A stretch of DNA of 64,000 nt from Macrostomum lignano (taxonomy: Eukaryota). How positions within the stretch are numbered: position 1 is the stretch's first letter; each line of letters begins with the position of its first letter. The DNA lies in contig NIVC01000290.1 of NCBI GenBank assembly GCA_002269645.1, forward strand, positions 1 to 64,000. The letters are read 5' to 3'. Positions 10,293 through 56,000 of this stretch are shown here, piece after piece. A model generated the notes under the pieces. That model searched no databases. It worked only from the letters and a program-made list of their open reading frames with translations, and was not told the origin of the DNA. The position numbers were made by a program, and so were the translations under genes.

Positions 10293-16769
<6,477 letters not shown>

Positions 16770-22157: not shown

Positions 22158-24381
22158 ATGCTGCCAGGCTCTGTCGCAGTGCTGCTCCTCGGCTGCTGCA
22201 GCCTCGCAGCCGGTCAGGCAATTTTTCGATCGAGGATTCTGTGCAGCACCGACTGCTTCAACATCAGCGTGACGAGCCAGGCAGCGGCCTACTCTGCCAG
22301 CGTCTGCCACGGCCTCGGAATGCAGCAGCTGGGTCAGGACAGCCTCGAGCTGTTCGTTCAGCACCTCCCACAGCTAACAAGGTTGGAGTGACATTTGAAC
22401 GTGAACATTTACACCCACGCGATGAAGGATTAGAATTACTTTTGCTTCATAGTAATCTTAAGCTGAATTCCGCGTTTCAAATGAATTTGTCCGGGCACTC
22501 CTAGACACCCCCTCGTAGTTCCATTTGGCTCCGAGCGCAGGTTGAGCCAGAGAGGCCAAGTTGGGGCAGTGCGAGCCAGGGGAATCTGATACTAAAATCT
22601 CCCAAGTTTTTACCCCCAGCCAGGCCGGACTCCAATGATTTGCTTGCATCCGGCCTTTTCTCCCTAAATCCCTTCGGTGCAATTCTGACATTTCCTTTGT
22701 TTATCTCGGCGTTTTTTTGTGTCGCGATCGACTTTGACCAGACCGTCTGCGCTGTAAAATATTTCACTTGGCGGTCAGCTGCAGGGGCTTCTGGCCGCAA
22801 GCCGATGGGCGCTTTACTGCCGCTTGGAAGTGCGGCCAGAGGGCACGTGCGGTCTGCTAGTTGTTTAAGTACCATCTACCGGTACTTGCAGGGCAGTGTA
22901 CCTCAAAGCTATTCGGGATTTAGTTAAAGGCCCAGCGTTACTAAAAAGAGCATTAGCTGATTTACCAGGTAGAAACTTTGTAGAATGCATGACATCGAAT
23001 TGGGTTTTATCTAAGTCTCCAGCGTAGTTCTTCAACTTCAAAACTGATGAGCTAACTCAGACCTTATAATTTTGGAAGTGTCAAAGCTTCATCGGAGCCG
23101 TACAAGTGACTGTGATCGCATCGAACTCTTCCCCACTTCTCACCCTATGCTCCTTGAACCCCGCAGCGGCCTCAGCCAGTCCCTTGTACTGGACTGACGC
23201 CACGATGGCTCCGCGGGCGTCGCCGGCGGATCGCGTGTTCGTGTGGCGCAACCAGACCAGCCAGCTCTACGTCTCCCCGGCCGCCGTGCTGACCGGATCC
23301 AAGTCCTTCAGCGATCCGGACTCATCCCGACAGTGGCTGTGATAACCAAGAACACGAAAAACAGCAGAGACTGGCAAGTGAAGAAAGTGACCAAAGGCGA
23401 GGGGCTGCCCATCTGCATGTGCACCTGCCCAAATCCGGCAGCGGCCTGCTGCAACCAGGTGTCGGCGTACTTCTGCAGCAGCGCGAGCGGAACAAATTTC
23501 TGCTTCCGCGTGATAGTCGACACTGCGAGGCCGTACCTGGAGGTCGCGTCCTGGTGTGGCAGGATAGCAGGAGAGATCCCGCTGGACCTGAGCGAGGACG
23601 GATCGGTCGAAGCCTTCAGCAAGTAGGAGCTCTTTAGTTTTAAGCAGCTTGGCATGTCCCTTTGTCCCTTTTAAATAATTGCACCGATTCACATTCGATT
23701 CCAACTGGAATTTGCAGCGTGTTCGACTCGCTCATCGATCCGTGCCATCCTTGCGTGCTTGCCTATGAGGAGTCGCCCTATCGCTTCAACGGCGGCCACG
23801 GTGCCAAGCTACAGATCAAGACTATGAGCCTGGTGGACGGCTACCTGCAGAAGAAAGTCTCTGAGTCCAAATGGGGCATCGTTGCGGTCCGAGACTCGGC
23901 TACGCTCGCCTTCTCCGGCCTGCAGGAGGTGGACACCTCGGCTAGTAGTGCTCAATTTGTCTGCGCCATTCCGGCTGAGCCAGAAACGACAACCACAACG
24001 CTATTAGCAACAACGCCCTCAGTGACTGTAGAGTCCACAGCAGCCACCTTAACAACTTCAATATCCTCAACAACAGGAACTTTGACGACACCAGCTGCAA
24101 CAACATCTACAACACCTTCAATAAGATCTTTAACAGCACAAACAACTGCACAATCGACAGACAGGATGACAGCATCCACGGAAGAGTCCGTAACTACCCC
24201 AGGTACGCAGCCGGCTCCAGCCACTCAGAAGTCCCAAGAAGAATTGATCGCTAAGAATATTCAAACTTACGAGAGTTCAAAACAGAAAGCCATTGTCTAT
24301 CTCCTACCAGCTCTGTTTATGGTCCTAGCACTGCTTGTGATTTACTACTTCGGAAATCTGGCATTCACTCAAGGTGTCTGA
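22158..24381 (+). CDS. Type I membrane protein: signal peptide, C-type-lectin-like Cys modules, Thr-rich mucin stalk, C-terminal TM. Exons ~22158-22381, ~23070-23622 (frameshift ~23317), 23718-24381
   Basis: Signal peptide MLPGSVAVLLLGCCSLAAG. CTLD-like stretches (YFCSS..TNFCFRV...EVASWCGRIAGEIP; QFVCAIP). Poly-T/S stalk; TM AIVYLLPALFMVLALLVIYYF. Intron 23623-23717 is phase-consistent. The first intron's boundaries are uncertain. Confidence 0.65.
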
Positions 24382-25495: not shown

Positions 25496-28400
25496 CTAGA
25501 AAACATTGGACTTCTTTCTTGGCTGCAGCAGCACCGCTGTCATCTGCTCCAGAACCTCCCGTTGTTGTCGCAGCTCCTCGCCCTGATCGTCCAGCCAGTT
25601 TGCTGCGGCCTCCTGGCGCCGAATTACCTCGGCCAGCTGCTGCTGCATAGCCGCGCCCTCCTGGCTGAAGTCCTCCGGTTCCAGACCGACACCGTCTAGC
25701 TTAGGTCGCAGCTTGCGCAGCGTCACGGACTGGTAGAACAGATAGAACAGGTATACAAAGTTCCGCTGGTTCTGCACCAGCACTTCGATCAAGGAGCGGC
25801 GACCGCTGCGGCGGCGGCAGCAGGAGAGGCGAGACAGAAGCCACATCAGAAAGTTGCGGGTCTCCAGCAGAATATTTAGCGGGGCTGGCAGGGCGGAGCG
25901 CTTGAAGAACTCCTGGTTGAGGTCGTATCGCTCAAACAGCCACAAAGACTTTGACTCTGAGTCCACCATGTCGATGGTTTTGCTAAACATGGCCACGATG
26001 ACGTTCAGAAGAAGAACCTGCACAATAACGATGTAGGCCACCATCAGTACGTACGGCACCAGCACGTTTCCGGGCGACTCCACGCACTTCTCCACTGAGT
26101 CCTCGGGCTCACCGTTTGTCTCATTTCTCTTGCACACGTTCTGCATATCGTCGAGGCCGTATTCGCCTGCATGGAAGGCAAAATGCAGTTTAACTTAATA
26201 TTAACACCAACTACCATTCAATTACAAACGCAAAATTTATCTGAATTTTTTTCGAAGGTTACAAGAAACGTCCTAAAGCCAATAATGAATGATTTAACTG
26301 ACATGTAGACAAACTGTAACAAAAATCCTGGTACCTAGTTCAGCATACCCTGCATGTGCATGTAGATACGTCATCGAAATTGATTCTGGCTGGCCCACTA
26401 AACTCACCGACGATCGTATAGAAGGTTCGATGGAACATTTCGATGAGGATATCATAGGCGGGAAGCTGGATAGCCTTCCCGTTACTGCCGATGTATTGAC
26501 CGTTCGGCCAGAGCAGGGCATGGAATGCGATGCCAAAGCCCAGCATGATGACGAAAAGGATGTATAAAAAGGGAATGAAGTCTTTCTTGATCATCAGCGA
26601 CAGCATCTTCAGTTTGACGCCCACCGACTCCAGCACAATCGAGATAAACAATATGCGTATCCAGAAGATCAGAGTGGTAACGACAATTAAGATGTAGCAC
26701 ATGTCCTGTGCAGCCTTGCCGTGGCCAATGACGTACGTGGACAGGCGAGATGCGGGGCTGAACTGCCTGGTGACGAAAGCCAGGAAGCCACATGATATGG
26801 CTACCAGGTCGATAGCGTTCCATCCGTCTGATATGTAGACTAGCAGCGTCTCCTCCTCGCAAGCTGCAATCATCTCTCGCAACTCTTCAACGAAGATTCC
26901 AAGCAGGGCAAAGTAGCAGAAAATCTCCGTGCTACTGGCGGTGCCTTGGAAGTCGTGCAGGATCATGGAGGACAGCAGGCTCACAAATACAAAGTAAAAT
27001 ATGGCGTGCAGGCGGAACTTCACGCAGGGAGTTCTGTAGAACAGCAGCATCTCCTTCATGTAGTCCACGGCACGCACCATCAGGCCATTGTGGCGGTGTG
27101 GCCTGTGGACTTCGTCCTCTTCGGTTGTCAGCTTGTTATTTTTACCAGAAACTGGCAGCAGTTGCACGAGCTCCTGTGCCTTCTCTTGAGCTTCCGTGTC
27201 GTTCTGTAAAATAGCAGCATGGCAGACAGTGTCAGTTGGGTCATTGAGAACCGTCTCGAGGAAGCTGCGCGTGCCGGGGCGCCGATAGCGTTTGATGAGG
27301 CGTGGCAGAAGCAGCATGAACGGAGGCAAGAAGCCGGACACAATGACCAGCTCGCGCGTGAGGACGCTGCTAAAATCGAAAAAGTCGCCGTACCAATTTT
27401 TGTCCGTAGCCAACTCCACGATGTCCAGCTTGATGAATTCGCTTGCGCAGCCTCGGGCCGAGAGATCCAGGATGTTATAGCCGGCATAGTTCGGCAATGG
27501 TAGGCTGACGTAGCTAATGGTAAGACTGTTGTTTGGCGAGTTGTCCACTTCCTTGACCTCTTTAATGACCTGGATGGCCATGCCCTCGCAGATTTCCGCT
27601 ACTCGACCGGCTTTGTCGACGAAGACGTCCTCGATGTCACGCCGATGGCTGAGTGAGCGCAGTACGGTCGTGGCGAGCAGAGCTAGCGGTACCAGATCGA
27701 ACTCCTCTTGGCGAAGCAGAGTCGGCACGAGTCTCAGGCGCCCAGTGAGGATGGCCCACATTACGAGCGATTGTAGCGGGTCTCGCATTGGTCGCTTATG
27801 GCAGCTACTGTCCGGGTTGTCGCTACAGCTGTCTTGCATGTCAAACATGAGGGGACGCTTGCTGAAGGACCAATAGGATGTGATTCTAGCCAGAAACTTG
27901 TTCATCTTGACAAAGTCGATTTTCACACCGCTCTCGTCGGTGCAGTTACGACGCAGCAGCTCGCGCACTCCAGCCTTCATTTTGCGCAGCGCCTTGGCAT
28001 AGAGATGGTCGATGCTTAACTCGATGTGGCGAGACAGAGATGACCAGAGGCTGCGATTTGCTACAAGGCGCTGCAAAAGTGGCTCATTCTGTGGGAACAG
28101 TACCAGCTGCACCACCTTCCAGGCGGCGCGACAAAGTATTCCTGAGCTCTCCAGATCCGCGCGAAGCCCAGCATTGAAAGCCTCCTGCAGCTCGCGAATC
28201 AAACGGTCGGCATCCACTTTTCTCTTGGTGATGACGGACTCCAGCATCTCCAGTTGCATGCACCGATCCGCTTCTCTGATCTGCGCGGCCAACTTTGAGC
28301 TGCAGAGACCGTCAATGTGCAGCAAGTGGTCCAGGTAAGCGCCACCTTCGCGGGAGCTGACAATCTGAGCCATGTTCTCTGCGTTGACAAAGTGACGCAG

Positions 28401-29075
28401 GTCGCGGATGATCTGCCGGCCGAGGCAATCAATGCCGGAAGTGTCGCCAGTCTCAGTCAGAAGGTCGATAGCTGTTTTTCCGTTGGCATCCATCACATTG
28501 AAGTCGGCCCCGTGCCGCAGCAGCAGCGCCAGCAGTTCCGGATTCTCGCACAGGGCGGCAATGTGGAGCGGCGTGTTGCCACTTGCATTTTGCTTGTTGA
28601 CGAACTCCGGGCCAGCCTTCACAACAAGTCGCGCCGCGTGACAGTCCTCAGCAAAGCAGGCCACGTGGAGCGCCAGATCACCGTAGGCATCCTCGAGGCT
28701 GCAGTCGGCATCGTGGCTCAGAAGCTCACGAACTATTTCCAGCTGCTTGGCTGCCACCGCCAGGTGCAGAGGCGTCTCCTTGGCCTGGTTGGTGGCGTTA
28801 ACGTCGGCGCCGCGGTCCAGCAGCAGGCGCAGACAAGCAAGTTTATCGCTACGCGCGCACACGTGCAGCACCGAGTCCCCGTTGCGCGTCCGAGCTCCGA
28901 TTTCAGCCCCAGCGTCCAGGAGCCGGCCCAGCGCGTCCAGAGAGCCTTCGGCGGCAGCAGCGTGAATCAGGCGACGACCGTTGGTGGCGTCGGCCAGGCC
29001 GTTTGGCGTTACTCCCGGTGATGCCATGAAGTCCGCCAGGGTGACCGTCGGCTCGTTCACTGCAAGATGGTCCAT
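25496..29075 (-). CDS. TRPM-type cation channel with N-terminal ankyrin repeats. Exons 29075-26408, 26166-25496 (1112 aa)
   Basis: Five full ankyrin repeats plus a partial sixth (ETPLHLAV, GNTPLHIAA). TRPM MHR4-like PLQSLVMWAILTGR...LALLAT; WYG; FYRTPCVKF; six TM segments; pore IVG|EY; LLLNVIVAMFS; TRP helix WLFERY...FKRSALPAPL; C-terminal coiled coil. Phase-1 GT-AG intron. Confidence 0.93.
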
Positions 29076-35569: not shown

Positions 35570-38226
35570 TCACATCCAGCCATTGACTCCGCCGTCTGCG
35601 GGCAGCACGGGGTCCTCGCTATGGGACTTGGACTTGGGCAGCAGGTCCAGGCCGTCCAGGTCCAGGCCGAATAGGAACTGGCGCTGCTCGGACTGCGGCT
35701 GCTGTTTCTGCTGCTGCTGCCGGTGGTGCTGCGCCACCGAGTGCGCGTCCACCGAGTAGCGCCGGTCGGCCATCAGCTGCATCGGCGGCGGCGGCACCGA
35801 GGTTGGCGGAAGGCCGCCGAAGAGAACGCCGTCCCACACGGCTGGAGGCGGACCGCCCTCTTGCCAGAGCCGCTTCAACTCGGCCAGCGACTTCGCATCG
35901 GCGGAGGCGGCAGCGGCGGCGCCTTCATCAGCGGTCTGTTGGGAGAGCGCGGTTGCTATGGTGACGCTGGCCGGCGCGGAGCCGCGGCGCTGCGTGTCTT
36001 CGGCCTGTCTGCGCGCATGGAACTCGTGAACCAGCCGAGCGGCCTCTGGCGACGGCTCCAACTCGGGGTCCAGCCACAGGCCCTGGCAGCGCAGGCTGAC
36101 ATACTCGCAGATGAGCTGCTTGGCAAAGCGAACCCGCTCTCTGGTGCCGCAGATTGTGAAATGCGTCTGCGGCGACGGCAGGCCCGGGATCGATTCCTGC
36201 TTGCGCGGCGTGGCGATGTGCGTGTCAGACAGCTGCTGCACCCAGCGGATGGTCTGGCCAGAGGCGCCAACGATTAGGCCGACCTTGTCCTGCTCCACAT
36301 ACAGCCGGTCCTCGGTGCGGTTGGGCTCGATGCGGCTCAGGCGCTCCTGCTGCACCTTGCTGAAGTGCTCGCTCATCTGCAGGATGATGCGCTTGGCCTG
36401 CAGTGGTGCGGGATGGACACGTCAGAGTAGGTCAGCATGAAGGGTGGCAAAGCAACAGCTAATGGCTACTAAGCAATTCACTGCAACATACCTCGCCAAG
36501 TTTCTCAGGCATTCCAGTAATCTCAAACACTGGCAACTCGTCACGAGCTGGCGTCTTCACCCACACCTTGAGCTGCTCACGCAGGTGCCTGATTCTCTGG
36601 CCTAGAAGTGGCAAATAGAATAGGGTAGGATGAAAATGTAATTGATGAATGTTACATATCGATTCCAATGAATTAAAACATATTTTATTTCATTGGAATA
36701 AAAAAATGATGCATTGAAATTTAGATTTTTAAGTATGACTAGAGCTATCTTAGCAATAGACAGGGGCATAAGGAGGGGGGATAGGGGGATGCATCCCCCC
36801 AAAGAGCCTGACCAAAACTTTTTTGTTGCCCTTTGTTGCTATACATGCTACCATGTGACTGTCATAGCACTTACCTTGGTGTAACCCCCCATAAAAATTC
36901 ACCTTGGTGTATCCCCCTATAGTAAATTCCTGGCTATGCCTCTGGCAATAGATTATTATTTAGCTAGACAACGCTAGTAAATAATAAAATCAAAATTAGA
37001 CACATTTGCTTTAAAACTTATCAAACAAAAAGTTTACCATCAATTTAACTTCTTGCAATTTTTTGCAATATATAAATTGTTTTAAATAAGATATATTGGC
37101 ATATGTAAGTGTATATCATAACTTAGAAATTTTAAATATTTAGTATAGTATAATAAGCTTTTCTTAGTTAAAAAATCTATTTAGTTGCCTTTGTTAAACA
37201 GATATTTTATATTTTATCAAATCAATAATTCTAATAATCGATTAGGCTTTTAGAATAATAAATATATATATTACATAATTATAAAAAATATACCAGGTCT
37301 AAATATAGATAGTAGTGCAACTAGACTAAAGCATAGAGTATTAGAAGTAAATTCAATCATGTATTAAAAATATGGCTAAATCACAAATTTAAATATTTTA
37401 AAATTTAAATTATACTAATATTAATTAAACTATCAATATCATACATCTATATTTTTATAAATTATAACATAAGATCTATAAAATTTCAAGATAGAAAGTA
37501 CTTACCATTCTTGCCAACAATCTCAGCAACATGATCTGATGAGGGTACTTGGATTCTTTCCGTCATAGTTAGTTTTGGTTCTTTATTCTCTCCAATAGCA
37601 GAAGGGCTAATTGTAGCTGCCATTCTTTTTAAGAAATCTGATTGCATTTCTTCATCTTGCAATCCAAGTTTCATTTGCTCATCAAATCGTCTTGTTAGCT
37701 CAGACATGGCGCATTGGTCCTTACTCTGTTGAGTTGGCTGAACTTTCTGGTCTAGGATAGAAGCAGATTGAATACAGTCAGCATTTCTTCCAGTGGCAGA
37801 AAACGAGAGTTCATTATCTAAGCGATTAGACAACAGTGAACGCGGCTTCTGCTTTTGATCAAATGCTTCGCCAGTCTTGAAAGTGGGACTGCCATTAGAC
37901 AGCGAGCCCAATAACCACTGGCACTGATCTTTCCCAATGCCTGATCCATTGGTATTGTAGCACGACTTGAGCTCAGAAATAAACGCAGCTTGATCGGATC
38001 CACTTCCACTATTTGAGCGACGTGAAACCGACAATACGGAAGTTAAAGCGTCAGAATTTGACTCCGTCTTGGGCAAATCTGTTGTTTGCAATGCACTAAA
38101 AAAGTCGTCGGCCAACGAATATCTGCAATTCGACGACACAGGTGTGTTTGGTGAAAACGATGATAGACAACCATTGACAGAACCAGATGGGAACTTGAAT
38201 GTGCTCTCAAGCACGGACTCAGACAT
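35570..38226 (-). CDS. MEX3: MEX-3-like tandem KH RNA-binding protein. Exons 38226-37506, 36601-36492, 36397-35570 (~552 aa)
   Basis: MTERIQVPSSDHVAEIVGKNG|QRIRHLR...VKTPARDELPVFEITG matches MEX3 KH1 (VPSSEHVAEIVGRQG...KTPVRGEEPVF). KH2 is VGLIVGASGQTIRWVQQ. Splice phases 1 and 0 are consistent. No RING is visible. Confidence 0.88.
36761..36944. mobile_element. Non-autonomous hAT-type MITE (184 bp) in MEX-3 intron 1
   Basis: TIRs CAGGGGCATA / CAGAGGCATA (rc). Perfect 8-bp TSD GCAATAGA (36753-36760, 36945-36952). Confidence 0.85.
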
Positions 38227-39320
38227 AGCTGTCAGTTGAAACAAATGAAAAGCACTAGCATTAAAGGCAAAGCCTTTAAGATATGAATGAGTTACGAAAA
38301 CGCAAATCGTGCAAGACACGCATGTCTAGCGCGTGCAAAATGAATGCGTTATATTGAACAAAATATTCTTAGATAAACTGTTTTAACAAAATTTAGATAA
38401 ATTAGACTTTTTATAACGTAATAGCAAAAACGTTTTTCGCTCTAAAAAGCCTTTTTATTTTATCCTTACAATATTTTTATTTTCTTTTAAATAAATTAAA
38501 CTACTCTCGGAACAAAATGAACTGAATATTTTGTTAGAAACAGTTCTTCACAGTTTCATAGAAACATAGAAACAGTTTCAGTTTCACCTACACCTTACCT
38601 TAACCTACTGGCTACTTTAGACTCGAGAACTACTCCAAGTTGTTCAATGTTATTCAATCAATGATGCAAATGTTTACAAGTAAAATTCAAATCGCACTTT
38701 ACCATAAAGTTTTAGGTGATTTTATTTTGATCTTTTTAAATGTGAGCTAAAATAAATCTAGCCTAGGCTATAAATATAGGCTAGGCTAGATCTGATCTGT
38801 TATTTTAACCTTTGATTTAATTCAAATTTTACCTGCCTTTTTAGTGCTATTGTGCACTAGTGCTTTAGCTATGCATCAGCATTTGTCAAGGGCAGTGACT
38901 ACTCGTCCAGTATCGGATAAATAACATAACTATTATTTGTCTGGTATACCAGATAAATAATTAATAACAGTGAAGTTTTTCATCCGGCACAGTACGGACG
39001 TGGATATATAATAAAAACTTGCAAAATACAGGGAATACTAAAAAAAGTAGTATATAGTTCACTTTTAGGCTAGAAAGCAGAAAATATTTGTTATGATTAG
39101 ATAGTGCTGTTTCTCATGCTATCCAGTATTAACCAGATAAATAGGGAAACATGGCTATTATCCAGTAACCAGACAAATAACCAACCATATTGCTATTTGT
39201 CTGGTTACTGGACAAATAACAACTGCCTTAGATTTATTCTTCATTTAGAATTTTTGAGTTTGTTATTTTCAAGCTGCTATCTCAAATGGCTATCTAATTT
39301 GACTTTGTCTTTATTTTGAT

Positions 39321-41119
<1,799 letters not shown>

Positions 41120-47504: not shown

Positions 47505-48655
47505 TGAGTCACTGGGTGCTCTTTATTGGCTCACTGGGTGTTCCTTATTGGCTCACTGAGTGTTCCCTATTGGGTCACTGGGTGTTCCCTATTGGGTCAC
47601 TGAGTGTTCCCTATTGGCTCACTGGGTGTTCCTTATTGAGTCAATGGGTGTTCCTTATTGGGTCACTGCGTGTTCCTTATTGGGTCACTGCGTGTTCCTT
47701 ATTGGGTCACTGAGTGTTCCCTATTGGGTCACTGAGTGTTCCCTATTGGGTCACTGGGTGTTCCCTATTGGGTCACTGAGTGTTCCCTATTGGCTCACTG
47801 GGTGTTCCTTATTGAGTCAATGGGTGTTCCTTATTGGGTCACTGCGTGTTCCTTATTGGGTCACTGCGTGTTCCTTATTGGGTCACTGAGTGTTCCCTAT
47901 TGGCTCACTGGGTGTTCCTTATTGAGTCAATGGGTGTTCCTTATTGGGTCACTGCGTGTTCCTTATTGGGTCACTGCGTGTTCCTTATTGGGTCACTGAG
48001 TGTTCCCTATTGGGTCACTGAGTGTTCCCTATTGGCTCACTGGGTGTTCCTTATTGAGTCAATGGGTGTTCCTTATTGGGTCACTGCGTGTTCCTTATTG
48101 GGTCACTGCGTGTTCCTTATTGGGTCACTGAGTGTTCCCTATTGGCTCACTGGGTGTTCCTTATTGAGTCAATGGGTGTTCCTTATTGGGTCACTGCGTG
48201 TTCCTTATTGGGTCACTGCGTGTTCCTTATTGGGTCACTGGGTGTTGCTTATTGGGTCACTGGGTGTTCCTTATTGGGTCACTGGGTGTTCCTTATTGAG
48301 TCAATGGGTGTTCCTTATTGGGTCACTGCGTGTTCCTTATTGGGTCACTGGGTGTTCCTTATTGGGTCACTGGGTGTTCCTTATTGAGTCAATGGGTGTT
48401 CCTTATTGGGTCACTGCGTGTTCCCTATTGGGTCACTGGGTGTTCCCTATTGGGTCACTGGGTGTTCCCTATTGGGTCACTGGGTGTTCCCTATTGGGTC
48501 ACTGGGTGTTCCCTATTGAGTCACTGGGTATTTCTTATTGGGTCACTGGGTGTTCCCTATTGGGTCACTGGGTGTTCCCTATTGGGTCACTGGGTATTTC
48601 TTATTGGGTCACTGCGTGTTCCTTATTGGGTCACTGGGTTCCTTATTGGGTCATT
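47505..48655. repeat. 22-bp minisatellite (attgggtcactgggtgttccct)n with higher-order variant blocks
   Basis: Direct inspection. Confidence 0.95.
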
Positions 48656-50021: not shown

Positions 50022-53000
50022 TCAGCTGCCCGCATTCTGCGGCCGCCTCCGCCGGCGTCGCCGCCTCCGCAGCAGCCGGGCGATGGCGTGCCGGAAGTCC
50101 TGATTGAAGACGGTGTACAGCACCGGGTTCAGCGCGCTGTTCGCGTAGCCCAGCCAGATGGCCAAGAACTGGACAGCCTCCAGCACCGCAGACGGCGGCT
50201 GGTCGCCGCCCGACGATTCGTTGCTGGTGACGCCGCGGACTAGGTACATCAGCGTGAAGGGCATCCAGCAGACGATAAACACCACGACGATGGCCAGCAT
50301 GCGCTGGGTAGCCCGCTGCTCCCGGAGGTCCGCTCGGCGAGGTCCCCGACGGTTAAGCGATAGCGGCTCGGCTGCCGTGGCGGCCTCGTGCGCCTCCTCC
50401 TCCAGCTGTGGCGCCACCGCCGCCGCCGCCGCCGCCGTGGGGTTCTCCAGAACGCAGGGCTCGTCGCCGGCCTCCGCGGCAGCTTCGCCATCGTCGTCAG
50501 CGACTGCTTCCTCGGTGGCGCTGCGGTTGTCGGCGATGGTTGGCGCCGGCAGCACCGTGGCCAGGTCGAGCTCGCGGTCGAACCAGACGCCGCTGGGCTG
50601 GTTCAGCTGCCGGTGCTGCTGCAGTCGGCGCTTGCGCAGGCAGCGAGCCCGCCGGCGCAGCAGGTGGAAGATCCGGGCGTACAGCACAACTAGGATGAGC
50701 AGCGGCAGGATGAAGCTGCCAGTTGCCGAGTAGATCACGTAGTTCGTCTCCTTAAACAGGTCGCAGGTGACGCGGCCGTCCCAGCTGGAGTTGGCGGCTC
50801 GCACCGGCACCAGAGAGCGGCCGAGCTTGGCCGCCGGGTCAACGAACTCGCGGCCGTCCCAGCCGATGAGTGGCGGCAGGCAGATGAGGCAGCTCAGCAG
50901 CCACACCAGAACCGAGTAGGCGACCGCCCGGCAGCGGTGCTGCTTCTCGCGGTACCACAGCGGGCAGACGGTGGCTGTAAACCGGTCGAAGGCGATGGCC
51001 ACGAGGCTCCACACGGAGGCGGTGCAGTAGAGCACATCCAGGCTGAGCCACAGGTTGCACAGCACCGGGCCGAACTGCCAGTGGCCTGCGGTGGGCAATG
51101 CGGAGTGACGTCACTTTCGGTGAGGAATGCGGAATGACGTCACTTTCGGTGAGGAATGCGGAATGACGTCACTTTCGATGAGGAATGCGGAATGACGTCA
51201 TCACTTTCGGTGAGGAATGCGGAGTGACGTCACTTTGGGTCAGGAATGCGGAATGACGCCACTGGGTGAGAAGTGCATAGCGTCGAGAAATACAAAGCAA
51301 TTCACATTGACGTCCATTGACGGTTAGGTTAGGAATTTTTGTGCCATGACTGCTGCCGAAGCATACATAGTGACATCACTACAGGTGAACTCCATCTCGC
51401 TCCTTTCCCTTTCGTTTATTCAACACCGTAGAGTTTCAGCTTAACAGTTGCAGTCCCGTGAATATGGCTGGCTGCCTCAGCTTGCGAAAATCTTCCTATT
51501 ATCTCTTTGCACTTTTATGGGACTATTCTTTGAGTAAACCACTTTGAGTAAAGCCGCTCATTTGCATTCCAGTTTCTGATTGGATTCTGCCATAGTTTGT
51601 GTTTTATCCCGTTTTATCCCAAATCTGCATTTCCTAAAAGTTGTGAAAGTGCGACGCTTTGGGTCTGCGCCTGCCCTCCTTTGATGCATATGCGATCCCC
51701 ACCCGGACACTGTCCCACCGACAGTTGCTCCCCCACCCGGACACTGTCCCACCGACAGTTGCTCCCCCACCCGGACACTTTCCCACCGGCACTGATCCCC
51801 ACCCGGACACTGTCCCACCGGCATTGATTTCCACCCGGACACTGTCCCACCGGCACTGATCCCCACCCGGACACTGTCCCACAGGCACTGATCCCCACCC
51901 GGACACTGTCCCACCGGCACTAATCCCCACCCGGACACTGTCCCACAGGCACTGATCCCCACCCGGACACTGTCCCACCGGCACTGATCCCCACCCGGAC
52001 ACTGCCCCACCGGCACTGATCCCCACCCGGACACTGTCCCACCGGCACTGATCCCCACCCGGACACTGTCCCACCGGCACTGATCCCCACCCGGACACTG
52101 TCCCAACGGCACTGATCCCCACCCGGACACTGTCCTTCCGGCACTGATCCCCACCCGGACACTGTCCCACAGGCACTGATCCCCACCCGGACACTGTCCC
52201 ACCGGCACTGATCCCCACCCGGACACTGTCCCACAGGCACTGATCCCCACCCGGACACTGTCCCACCGGCACTAATCCCCACCCGGACACTGTCCCACAG
52301 GCACTGATCCCCACCCGGACACTGTCCCACCGGCACTGATCCCCACCCGGACACTGCCCCACAGGCACTGATCCCCACCCGGACACTGTCCCACCGGCAC
52401 TGATCCCCACCCGGACACTGTCCCACCGGCACTGATCCCCACCCGGACACTGTCCCAACGGCACTGATCCCCACCCGGACACTGTCCTTCCGGCACTGAT
52501 CCCCACCCGGACACTGTCCCAACGGCACTGATCCCCACCCGGACACTGTCCTTCCGGCACTGATCCCCACCCGGACACTGTCCCACCGGCACTGATCCCC
52601 ACCCGGACACTGTCCCACAGGCACTGATCCCCACCCGGACACTGTCCCACCGGCACTGATCCCCACCCGGACACTGTCCCACCGGCACTGATCCCCACCC
52701 GGACACTGTCCCACAGGCACTGATCCCCACCCGGACACTGTCCCACCGGCACTGATCCCCACCCGGACACTGTCCCACCGACAGTTGCTCCCCCACCCGG
52801 ACACTGTCTCACCGGCACTGATCCCCACCCGGACACTGTCCCACCGGCACTGATCCCCACCCGGACACTGTCCCACCGGCACTGATCCCCACCCGGACAC
52901 TGCCCCACAGGCACTGATCCCCACCCGGACACTGTCCCACCGGCACTGATCCCCACCCGGACACTGTCCCACCGGCACTGATCCCCACCCGGACACTGTC

Positions 53001-56000
53001 CCAACGGCACTGATCCCCACCCGGACACTGTCCTTCCGGCACTGATCCCCACCCGGACACTGTCCCAACGGCACTGATCCCCACCCGGACACTGTCCTTC
53101 CGGCACTGATCCCCACCCGGACACTGTCCCACCGGCACTGATCCCCACCCGGACACTGTCCCACAGGCACTGATCCCCACCCGGACACTGTCCCACCGGC
53201 ACTGATCCCCACCCGGACACTGTCCCACCGGCACTGATCCCCACCCGGACACTGTCCCACAGGCACTGATCCCCACCCGGACACTGTCCCACCGGCACTG
53301 ATCCCCACCCGGACACTGTCCCACCGACAGTTGCTCCCCCACCCGGACACTGTCTCACCGGCACTGATCCCCACCCGGACACTGTCCCACCGGCACTGAT
53401 CCCCACCCGGACACTGTCCCACAGGCACTGATCCCCACCCGGACACTGTCCCACCGGCACTGATCCCCACCCGGACACTTTCCCACCGGCACTGATCCCC
53501 ACCCGGACACAATCATCCCCGCACAGAAAGGCGGCCCTTCAGGCCTTGCAGCGGCCGGACAGGAGCTGAAAAGCCCGCAGCAGCCTCTCCCGCCGCACAG
53601 GGCAGGTCAGCGGGCCGCCCCAGCTGAGCAGTCTCAGACCGCAATTGACTGTGACAGTTTTATTGCCCCACCCACCGCCTCGTCTGGCCAGCCTCATCTT
53701 CGCGGCTCCATCAACTTGGCCAGCATCCTCGCAGCTACGAATTTCAAGTCTTTCTGCATCTTCCCAGCATCCCACCGGCCTCATCCCCGGTTGCGGATTC
53801 GCACAGCTCTGGGGAGGACTTTAATCGCAAGAGCTGCTGCAGAAAAGATTGATGACCGCCGGGTCAGATCAGGCTGAGCTCGAGAGTCCTGAGAATTTGC
53901 ATTTTATTTAGAGATGAAAAATGAGCGAGATGGAAAGTTTTCAAATTTCGCAGGAAGCAGTGCTGGAAATGCTATTTTTGTCCCACGGCAGAATTATTTT
54001 TTGTTTGAGAGAAAATGTGACATAATTCGTATTGAAATCATCCGAATAAATAATAACCGAACATTCCCGAACGCTAAAATTACCCAAATCAAATAATTCC
54101 CCAAGCCAAAAATTCCTCTTCGAATGCTGTCCCCTTCGAATGCTGTCCCCTTCGAATGCTATCCCCTTCGAATGCTGTCCCCTTCGAATGCTGTCCCCTT
54201 CGAATGCTGTCCCCTTCGAATGCTATCCCCTTCGAATGCTGTCCCCTTCGAATGCTGTCCCCTTCGAATGCTATCCCCTTCGAATGCTGTCCCCTTCGAA
54301 TGCTGTTCCCTTCGAATGCTGTTCCCTTCGAATGCTGTCCCCTTCGAATGCTGTCCCCTTCGAATGCTGTTCCCTTCGAATGCTGTTCCCTTCGAATGCT
54401 GTCCCTTAAGTGCCGTCTGACATCCCGGCCAGGAATCCCAGCCACTCGCCCCCGGCCCAATTTGCATAAGTCCGTTGGGCAGCGCTCCCACGGGGAGCCG
54501 GGAGGTGAGGGCGGCAGCTGGGGGGGGGGCAATCAGGCGGGTCAGCGCGGGTCGGAGGGCCGCCAGCCGTGGGGAACACAAAATCTGCGGCCATCCGGCC
54601 AGCCCGGACACTTTCCCCGGCCACTTCTTTAACTCGGCCTTCTGTGGTCAAAATATCCCGAGCATTGGCGCGACCGCTTCCAACCAATTTGGGCCGCCTA
54701 TTTCTGGCCAGCCCTCTGAACAACTTCGAATTTGAGCAGCTCTGCTTTTGGGACATGTTTTACCGAAGTGGCGCTTCCGGTTCTCGGAGGGCTCCGCCAT
54801 CTCGGCTGAGCAAACTCACAGCAAGGATTAGCGGCGCTGGGATCAGACTGGGGATGAGCGAAATGGCCTCACAAACTTTTATTGCTCATCATCTACTCAG
54901 CTGCAGACTGGCAGCTGCGGACTCAGCTGATCGCTGCTCACGCCTGATCCGGACTTTGATGGGGCTCCTCAGGATCACTGAGTCCCCACCTCATCTCTGC
55001 TCAGCTTACTTTCTGTCTGGCTCACCCTCCTCTCCATCTACTCTCTGCCTGTCTCACCCTCCTCTCTATCTACTCTCTGCCTGTCTCACCCTCCTCTCCA
55101 TCTACTCTCTGCCTGTCTCACCCTCCTCTCTATCTACTCTCTGCCTGTCTCACCCTTTTCTCCATCTATTCTCTGCCTGTCTCACCCTCCTCTCCATCTA
55201 CTCTCTGCCTGTCTCCACCTCCTCTCCATCTACTCTCTACCTGTCTCACCCTCCTCTCCATCTACTCTCTACCTGTCTCATCCTCCTCTCCATCTACTCT
55301 AATTTCTGCCTGTCTCACCCTCCTCTCCATCTACTCTACTTTCTGCCTGTCTCACCCTCCTCTCCATCTACTCTCTACCTGTCTCACCCTCCTCTCCATC
55401 TACTCTCTACCTGTCTCATCCTCCTCTTCATCTAATCTCTGCCTGTCTCACCCTTTTCTCCATCTATTCTCTGCCTGTCTCACCCTCCTCTCCATCTACT
55501 CTCTGTCTGTCTCACCCACCCCGCGATCTACTCTCCGCTTGTCTCATATCTCACTCCCTTCAATATACTCTGTTCTAATCTTCTCGTCTCCTTCACCCAC
55601 CCTCTCCCTGTCTCACCCACTACTCCATCCACGCACACAATCCAGTCTGGTTCATTTCAGGTCAAACCGATTGCCGCAGGCGGTGTTTGCTCAGGCGGCT
55701 GCGCACTTCTTTGAGTGGGCGGAAATACGACTCAGGGAATGTTCTTGGTGTAAGGAACGAGATTCGAAGACGGCGCTGGGTCTTAGAGACATCGAAATGT
55801 TTTATAGTACAGTGCTACATTTGAATAATTTGTCAAAGTACGACAGCTGGGTGTGGAATTCACGATGGCCCTGAGCACTCACTCACTCACACACTCACTC
55901 ATTCACTCAGTCACTCATTCACTCACTCACTCATTCACTCACTCACCCATCACGGCATTCACAGAGGACAATGGCAGCACAGTGAGCGCCAGCAGGAAGT

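Follow-up and report, generated by a model that had tools for sequence, protein, structure and literature searches.

Animal channels that belong to the families TRPM and TRPS are described as lacking ankyrin repeats (PMC7306681), and reconstructions of the TRPM/TRPS ancestor rest on this description. On contig NIVC01000290.1 of the flatworm Macrostomum lignano, within positions 1 to 64,000 (hereafter, the window), an earlier note written from the DNA letters had recognized a gene that joins ankyrin repeats to a melastatin-type channel. The note had stated the established view of the two families correctly, and had taken the gene for a new chimera. The locus raises two questions: (i) are the fusion and the TRPM likeness of its channel half genuine; and (ii) how did a TRPM-like channel come to carry an ankyrin domain? 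We find that the window gene is one member of an old, expanded ankyrin-headed TRPM-like subfamily of flatworms, and not a one-off chimera. The best explanation, to which we give a probability of about 60%, is that the gene belongs to a subfamily of TRPM-related cation channels, spread across flatworms, in which the melastatin head was replaced by an ankyrin domain in an early rhabditophoran flatworm TRPM.

Ankyrin repeats and a channel share one open reading frame

The gene contains by far the longest open reading frame (ORF) of the window (911 codons, minus strand, 26340-29075), which is closed on its 5' side by an in-frame TAA four codons before the ATG. A GTGAGT donor directly follows ...TATACGATCGTCG, and an AG-type acceptor, ...TTCCATGCAG, lies 241 nt downstream of the donor. 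The spliced, in-frame coding sequence (3339 nt) specifies 1112 residues, which comprise, in order, six ankyrin repeats, a helical linker, an MHR4-like domain, pre-S1, S1-S6, a TRP helix of TRPM type, a rib-like helix, and a predicted coiled coil (Table 1). The motifs quoted in the earlier note are all present (PLQSLVMWAIL at residues 433-443, FYRTPCVKF at 679-687, LWLFERY at 964-970, and LPAP at 982-985), and its reading that one uninterrupted exon encodes the ankyrin repeats and the channel as far as S5 holds: exon 1 spans 2668 nt with the ORF intact. Because the ankyrin and channel parts lie within one ORF, the fusion is not a gene-model artefact, as the note had argued.

The splice junction is identical in P0001 (M. 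lignano BOX15_Mlig004154g2), the public model of a near-identical locus. P0001 has a frameshifted, shortened C-terminus that results from a 1-nt deletion after ...MVDS in exon 2 (compared with window positions 25930-25960), where it reads ...MVDSSQSLCGCLS...; the window copy is intact at this site, and its C-terminus agrees with that of the paralogue P0002. The frameshift is either an assembly indel or the sign of a decaying homeologue. The intron lies about 10 residues from that of P0022, a canonical M. lignano TRPM, and this difference in position is uninformative.

An ankyrin gene misassembled onto a TRPM fragment, or a pseudogene, might be suspected in a genome as repeat-rich and polyploid as that of M. 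lignano, with 55 tandem-array rows in the window and a near-identical public copy that carries a 1-nt frameshift in exon 2. However, the junction lies within a repeat-free exon, the same collinear architecture recurs in at least ten independent paralogues as well as in members, some of them on transcript-like contigs, from three further flatworm genera with a name, and the ORF is intact over all 1112 codons, with every family-invariant residue of the family alignment retained. We regard an artefact or a dead gene as scarcely credible.

The channel half is of melastatin type

From the MHR4-like domain to the TRP helix, the gene is TRPM-type by similarity. In a phmmer search of PDB sequences with the non-ankyrin part of the protein (residues 251-1112), the best 60 distinct sequences were all TRPM. 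TRPM3 (E-value 6e-32 over residues 432-1010) and Nematostella TRPM2 (2.5e-31) led, followed by TRPM4, TRPM2, TRPM1, TRPM5, TRPM8, and TRPM7, and E-values to TRPM3, TRPM2, TRPM4, TRPM5, and TRPM8 ranged from 1e-20 to 6e-32. HHalign matched residues 351-700 of the family to the stretch of canonical TRPMs from MHR4 to pre-S1 (494-824) with a probability of 99.8% (E-value 6e-29), and Pfam placed Ion_trans at residues 691-960 (E-value 2e-14). An AlphaFold2 (AF2) model was built from a 16-sequence family alignment, with a predicted local distance difference test (pLDDT) score of 75.4 and a predicted TM-score (pTM) of 0.70. In this model, an MHR4-like helical domain (437-611) is followed by a disordered loop (612-663), pre-S1, S1-S4, the S4-S5 linker, S5, a pore helix (873-889), S6 (920-950), and the TRP helix (954-978). 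When the model was compared with PDB structures by Foldseek, TRPM2, TRPM3, TRPM4, TRPM5, and TRPM8 were found in the top 50 with the best TM-scores (TMq, 0.31-0.41).

The likeness to canonical TRPMs (mouse and rabbit TRPM3, Nematostella TRPM2, and human TRPM4) is collinear from MHR4 through the TRP helix. Shared features include the pore-loop cysteine pair (C901 and C917, whose columns are invariant in the family alignment), a Ca2+ site of the form W-N-x-x-D and E-x-x-(E/Q), and the RYxLxxEF...LPxP segment. The AF2 model of the window protein predicts helices that may correspond to the rib helix and the terminal coiled coil of TRPMs. The Ca2+-site motifs, E731-x-x-E734 and W752-N753-x-x-D756, match E828, Q831, N865, and D868, the Ca2+ site of TRPM4 (PMC13602211). 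W965 and E975 of the TRP helix are invariant across the family. The selectivity filter, TIV-G-E-Y, is of the 'GE' type that the window protein has in common with TRPM3, whereas TRPM4 has FGQ. There are differences within this shared core as well: the TRP box is a derived variant (LWLFERY here, WKFQRY in canonical TRPMs), identity is only 17-27%, and the ankyrin-headed proteins form a separate clan. Pfam TRPM_tetra (PF16519) has no match in the window protein, so the coiled coil is taken from the predicted structure only. In the paralogue P0002, an Ala/Ser/Glu-rich insert of about 50 residues lies between the two conserved pore-loop cysteines, which indicates that the extracellular pore turret is strongly variable among Macrostomum paralogues.

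Could this likeness be superficial, and the protein be a divergent member of TRPC, TRPN, or TRPA? Its layout of N-terminal ankyrin repeats, helical linker, transmembrane region, TRP helix, and a C-terminal pair of helices with a coiled coil at the end is that of TRPC, and the LP(A/P)P(L/F)N that follows the TRP helix resembles the LPxPFN of TRPC, with LPxP(F/L)N common to both. NOMPC, the TRPN channel, likewise combines ankyrin repeats with a TRP channel, and was first in Foldseek by E-value. However, the NOMPC match has a TMq of only 0.26 and is driven by the ankyrin repeats, of which NOMPC has 29 and the window protein six. NOMPC is not in the best 60 PDB sequence matches of the non-ankyrin part, and neither is any TRPC, TRPN, or TRPA. 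No TRPC is found in the Foldseek top 50, and the window protein has neither the EWKFAR box nor Pfam TRP_2 (PF08344). In the pore-to-TRP region, the mean distance of the family is 1.52 to TRPMs versus 1.84 to TRPC6; TRPC6 is about equally far from TRPMs (1.79) and in the tree of this region falls outside the family and TRPM together. The TRPC6 reference here is a 116-residue pore-TRP fragment (human 675-790), with its sequence verified against the PDB alignment. A jackhmmer search that started from the S1-TRP region of the window protein found TRPV1 in part; its sole TRPA1 sequence, the truncated model P0189, went undetected. Given in addition the MHR4 homology described above, we consider a TRPC, TRPN, or TRPA origin very unlikely. 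The channel half thus resembles TRPM, as the earlier note had proposed, rather than TRPC, TRPV, or TRPA, and phmmer, Foldseek, HHalign, and pore-to-TRP distances agree on this point.

An ankyrin domain and a novel linker stand in place of the melastatin head

Canonical TRPMs carry SLOG/MHR1-2 and MHR3 ahead of MHR4. The window protein has no SLOG/MHR1-2, recognizable MHR3, NUDT9H, or kinase, and has six canonical ankyrin repeats and a novel linker of about 120 residues instead. Pfam matched the repeats as Ank_2 (E-value 1e-37; five to six repeats) in a clean 33-residue register, and the AF2 model shows six helix pairs at a pLDDT of about 90, in line with the five to six repeats counted in the earlier note. 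Behind them, the model places about a dozen linker helices (residues 235-406). The linker motif VLF(R/P)xD/NxxLL is conserved and common to the Macrostomum and neodermatan members of the family: VLFREDAxML in one subclade corresponds to ILLNDDxELL in the other, and a downstream LY motif is shared as well. Linker motifs found in both subclades argue for a single origin of the whole architecture.

We searched for remnants of a melastatin head at several levels. A Pfam scan of the protein found no SLOG (LSDAT_euk), NUDT9H, or kinase, while the control proteins P0022 and P0025 do match LSDAT_euk. HHalign comparison with canonical TRPM N-termini gave nothing matching SLOG or the bulk of MHR3, and the linker had no significant HHalign match to TRPM SLOG or MHR3 profiles. 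A profile of residues 205-432 searched against the sequences of solved structures in PDB returned spurious matches only. When seven canonical TRPMs were searched against the whole window by tblastn, no match was obtained N-terminal of their MHR4; therefore, the window holds no hidden SLOG exons. The next ORFs upstream of the gene are unrelated, and no SLOG exons were found there. The absence of these domains, which had been read from the DNA, is thus upheld: that of MHR1-3/SLOG by Pfam, HHalign, and tblastn, and that of NUDT9H and kinase by Pfam.

The architecture recurs across flatworms

Two word-index searches, one with the non-ankyrin part and one with an alignment of 14 sequences, had returned three M. 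lignano proteins only. The family came to light when 1.84 billion cluster representatives were searched exhaustively, with 15 matches below 1e-30. Pfam found ankyrin, TRPM2-like, and Ion_trans domains together in P0004-P0009 and P0183, and ankyrin with Ion_trans in P0010, P0014, P0015, and P0018; a purpose-built ankyrin hidden Markov model flagged the same Pfam-positive set and a few more. M. lignano itself has many loci, which make up at least ten lineages below 50% identity; near-identical copies number two to eight in each. Members elsewhere come from Opisthorchis viverrini, O. felineus, Dicrocoelium dendriticum, and the tapeworm Schistocephalus solidus, and a Fasciolopsis buski sequence (auto-named 'TRPM7') belongs to the clan by its channel region alone. 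The S. solidus protein P0179 is a full-length UniRef entry of 1413 residues, also auto-named 'TRPM7', and has the same length as the Logan sequence P0018. P0014 comes from Logan run DRR639838, and one clan member on a Logan contig is a single uninterrupted ORF of 1072 codons. This ORF and P0179 lend transcript support from outside the window gene. The window protein shares with this clan the ankyrin repeats, the linker motif, the MHR4-like domain, the TRPM-like transmembrane region, and monophyly in that region.

Two claims of the earlier note do not survive this comparison. A new chimera in one gene is at odds with at least ten M. lignano lineages and with members in flukes and a tapeworm, all in one clan. 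Nor is the architecture new to the databases, since UniProt and NCBI hold such proteins as unnamed, 'ANK_REP_REGION', 'TRPM-like domain-containing', or 'TRPM7' entries; the note itself had listed prior cataloguing among the outcomes that would refute it. Recurrence in a single clan means that any shuffling event is ancient, and preceded the split between Macrostomorpha and Neodermata.

Some of the gene models are faulty: the S. solidus genome models P0176-P0178 are one gene cut into three pieces, and the O. viverrini models P0010 and P0173 contain two complete channel domains, that is, fused tandem paralogues. Predictions that split or fuse these genes, or label them 'TRPM7', call for caution in annotation and are probably why the family went unnoticed.

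Origin of the ankyrin-headed channels

We propose that SLOG/MHR1-2 and most of MHR3 were exchanged for a canonical six-repeat ankyrin domain and a family-specific helical linker, while MHR4, pre-S1, S1-S6, the TRP helix, the rib helix, and the C-terminal coiled coil would have stayed melastatin-type. The most likely history is one head replacement in an early rhabditophoran TRPM, followed by strong expansion in Macrostomum. The closest canonical relatives are consistent with this proposal. Flatworm TRPMs (P0021 of Schistosoma rodhaini, and P0022 and P0028 of M. lignano) are nearest both by phmmer rank and by mean distance, which is 1.37 and 1.50 for the two subclades versus 1.55-1.82 for other groups. 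They keep SLOG and a full TRPM2-like domain, whereas the window gene has no SLOG.

We built neighbor-joining (NJ) trees from scoredist distances (200 bootstraps; 310 trimmed columns from S1 to the TRP helix) for 109 TRPM-like representatives together with TRPV1 and TRPA1. The TRPA1 model P0189, which has no S1-S4, was replaced by P0188, and P0002, cut by its pore-loop insert, was left out. The Macrostomum subclade (support 0.97-0.99) and the subclade of neodermatan and unnamed members (0.95-0.98) were well supported, and the clan as a whole received 0.98 in the unrooted tree without distant outgroups and 0.56 when TRPV1 and TRPA1 were included.

Several points weigh against the best explanation. 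With TRPV1 and TRPA1 as root, the clan branches in the NJ tree outside every one of the remaining 87 TRPM-like representatives, which include lamprey TRPM2, hemichordate TRPM3-like and TRPM-like-2, choanoflagellate P0060, and Rhodelphis P0071. At face value, this topology argues against an origin within flatworm TRPMs, although the nodes that hold the clan outside have support of only 0.47-0.60. A grouping of the clan with flatworm canonical TRPMs received 0.32 unrooted and 0.07 rooted. These are distance trees only, and their references from other TRP families are TRPV1, TRPA1, and, for the pore-to-TRP region, the TRPC6 fragment. The query's own match to PF25508 (TRPM2-like/MHR4; residues 421-520, E-value 1e-5) scores 25.9 bits, below the cut-off of 27; paralogues P0004-P0009 and P0183 score 27.6-45.8 bits. 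Clan members P0012, P0014, P0019, P0024, and P0031 lack a species assignment, so restriction to flatworms is not proven. Finally, the ion selectivity, Ca2+ dependence, and ankyrin role suggested below are read from residues only.

The rooted topology suits a different history, in which the clan is the relic of an ankyrin-bearing 'proto-melastatin' lineage that split off before SLOG joined the TRPM/TRPS ancestor, and that persists solely or chiefly in flatworms. Here, the ankyrin repeats of the clan would be homologous to the degenerate repeats in TRPM MHR3. Beyond the sister position of the clan to all other TRPM-like sequences, choanoflagellate and Rhodelphis included, the order of ankyrin domain, helical linker, MHR4, transmembrane region, TRP helix, and coiled coil parallels TRPC and TRPN, and HHalign gives a weak match (probability 14%) between the family's ankyrin repeats and the cryptic-ankyrin part of MHR3. 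Such a lineage would also fit the inferred loss of ankyrin repeats before the TRPM-TRPS split (PMC7306681). However, fast-evolving flatworm sequences joined to outgroups at distances above 2, with the low node supports given above, are a textbook setting for long-branch attraction, which is a clear risk for the rooted position of the clan. All named members are flatworms, so a relic would require many independent losses; among canonical groups, the flatworm TRPM clade lies at the shortest distance; and the clan keeps derived TRPM features, namely the cysteine pair of the pore loop, the site WNxxD/EExR(E/Q), and a TRP helix that reads RYxLxxEF. We therefore hold a relic to be unlikely, though worth keeping in view. 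The stronger claim that the clan is a separate ancient TRP family, ankyrin-bearing and split from the TRPM/TRPS stem before SLOG, which would reveal the form of the melastatin ancestor and link the cryptic repeats of MHR3 to a real ankyrin domain, appears somewhat less likely again.

A position outside the canonical TRPM groups would also be expected if the clan derived from TRPS (soromelastatin) and represented, with its head replaced, the TRPS that is otherwise missing from flatworms. TRPS (ced-11-like), compared here by description only, is the sister of TRPM, has a divergent TRP domain, and like the clan falls outside the TRPM alpha and beta groups. Among lophotrochozoans, TRPS is known from molluscs only (PMC7306681), and TRP box 1 is common to TRPM and TRPS and does not discriminate between them. 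On the other hand, TRPS proteins combine SLOG with Nudix domains and are free of ankyrin repeats (PMC7306681), a domain composition that the window protein does not share. The best nameable canonical matches belong to the TRPM type (flatworm TRPMs, TRPM-like 2, TRPM2, and TRPM3-like), and the TRP helix segment RYDLNQEFFKRSALPAP is near the TRPM consensus. We judge it to be improbable, and favor head replacement in a flatworm TRPM.

In P0022 (M. lignano BOX15_Mlig003066g1, L002:3001-22147), a member of the canonical flatworm TRPM clade, a true SLOG is preceded by three to four weak ankyrin repeats (residues ~95-215; Pfam Ank_2, 32.9 bits). The exons that encode them are 560-610 bp apart and lie directly 5' of the SLOG exon. 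According to this gene model, P0022 may represent an intermediate Ank-SLOG-TRPM architecture. If the model is right, it suggests a stepwise path, in which an Ank-SLOG-TRPM arose and SLOG was then lost, to give the architecture of the window gene.

Predicted properties of the channel

In the proposed working of the channel, four subunits would assemble through the terminal coiled coil that the AF2 model predicts, and the V-G-E filter would line a cation pore that also admits divalents. Divalent passage is predicted because the filter contains Glu, with 'GE' as in TRPM3, unlike the 'FGQ' of monovalent-selective TRPM4. Cytosolic Ca2+ could tune the channel at the sensor-domain site formed by E731, E734, N753, and D756, together with E975 of the TRP helix. 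Gating by ADP-ribose or nucleotides at SLOG or NUDT9H would not be expected, because both domains are absent. By analogy with TRPA, TRPN, TRPV, and TRPC, one may speculate that the ankyrin domain receives cytosolic input, whether from binding partners, the cytoskeleton, or thermal, chemical, or redox signals; this is the least supported step of the proposal.

Relation to the literature and significance

We did not find a description of an ankyrin-bearing flatworm TRPM family in the literature searched, although the sequences are already in databases. The text of the paper that describes TRPM and TRPS as free of ankyrin repeats does not name platyhelminths (PMC7306681). A survey from 2026, which deals with how TRPM domains were gained and lost, speaks of cryptic MHR3/4 repeats only and does not mention flatworms (PMC13143021). 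Papers on flatworm TRPMs (TRPM_PZQ, schistosome TRPs, and planarian TRPMs) do not mention ankyrin-bearing TRPMs. One comparative paper says of TRPM architectures, in passing and with reference to a supplementary figure, that they 'show fewer ankyrin repeat domains'.

The clan shows either a wholesale head swap that left a working channel core, or a surviving ankyrin-bearing relative of TRPM. The target of praziquantel is one of the flatworm TRPMs. The gene described here is not an orthologue of TRPM_PZQ, the flatworm TRPM that has been studied, and the present results do not bear on praziquantel sensitivity. Since the clan occurs in liver flukes and a tapeworm, and no named non-flatworm sequence belongs to it, it is a candidate parasite-specific channel class.

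Features and surroundings of the gene

Table 1. Features of the ankyrin-headed TRPM-like gene, in window positions (aa, residues of the encoded protein).
Feature	Positions	Strand	Details or basis
Whole coding region	25496..29075	-	2 exons, 1112 codons + stop
Exon 1	26408..29075	-	2668 nt; Met1 to first base of codon 890
Intron	26167..26407	-	241 nt, GTGAGT...CAG, phase 1, within the selectivity-filter motif
Exon 2	26166-25496	-	Includes stop
Ankyrin repeat domain, six repeats, aa ~31-229	28389..28985	-	Pfam Ank_2, E-value 1e-37; AF2
Family-specific helical linker, aa 230-350	28026..28388	-	Family alignment
MHR4-like domain, aa 351-611	27243..28025	-	HHalign, PF25508, phmmer to TRPM3
Acidic/polar loop, aa 612-663	27087..27242	-	AF2 pLDDT ~30-40; length-variable in family alignment
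Segment with TRPM-type Ca2+-site residues E731, E734, N753, D756	26631..27086	-	phmmer, AF2, motifs
S4-S5 linker, S5, pore helix to filter motif TIV-G, aa 816-890	26408..26630	-	phmmer, AF2
Filter G890-E891, pore loop with C901/C917, S6, aa 890-950	25985..26166	-	Alignment, AF2
TRP helix LWLFERYDLNQEF (aa 964-976), LPAPLN, post-TRP helix, aa 951-1005	25820..25984	-	phmmer, AF2
Rib-like helix, aa 1015-1038	25721..25792	-	AF2; Q1035, R1043 conserved
C-terminal 45-residue helix, predicted tetramerising coiled coil, aa 1058-1102	25529..25663	-	AF2 only

The window is dense in micro- and minisatellites, and the 55 rows counted above are Tandem Repeats Finder arrays with a score of at least 200. Examples are (CTGT)x274, a 32-mer x56, a 22-mer x52, and (CTA)x172, at positions such as 39644-40742, 51694-53510, 47508-48653, and 14637-15150. 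Such arrays account for many of the window's long 'ORFs'; the interval of the TRP gene is free of them. Just downstream of the gene, an ORF of 239 residues on the plus strand (23662-24381) encodes a long mucin-like stretch, rich in Thr, Ser, and Ala, and a hydrophobic segment at the C-terminus. Two minus-strand ORFs (35570-36376 and 37486-38319) contain KH-domain-like motifs (LIVGASGQTIRWVQ; VAEIVGKNGKYF). They probably represent exons from the neighboring upstream gene, and are unrelated to TRP channels.

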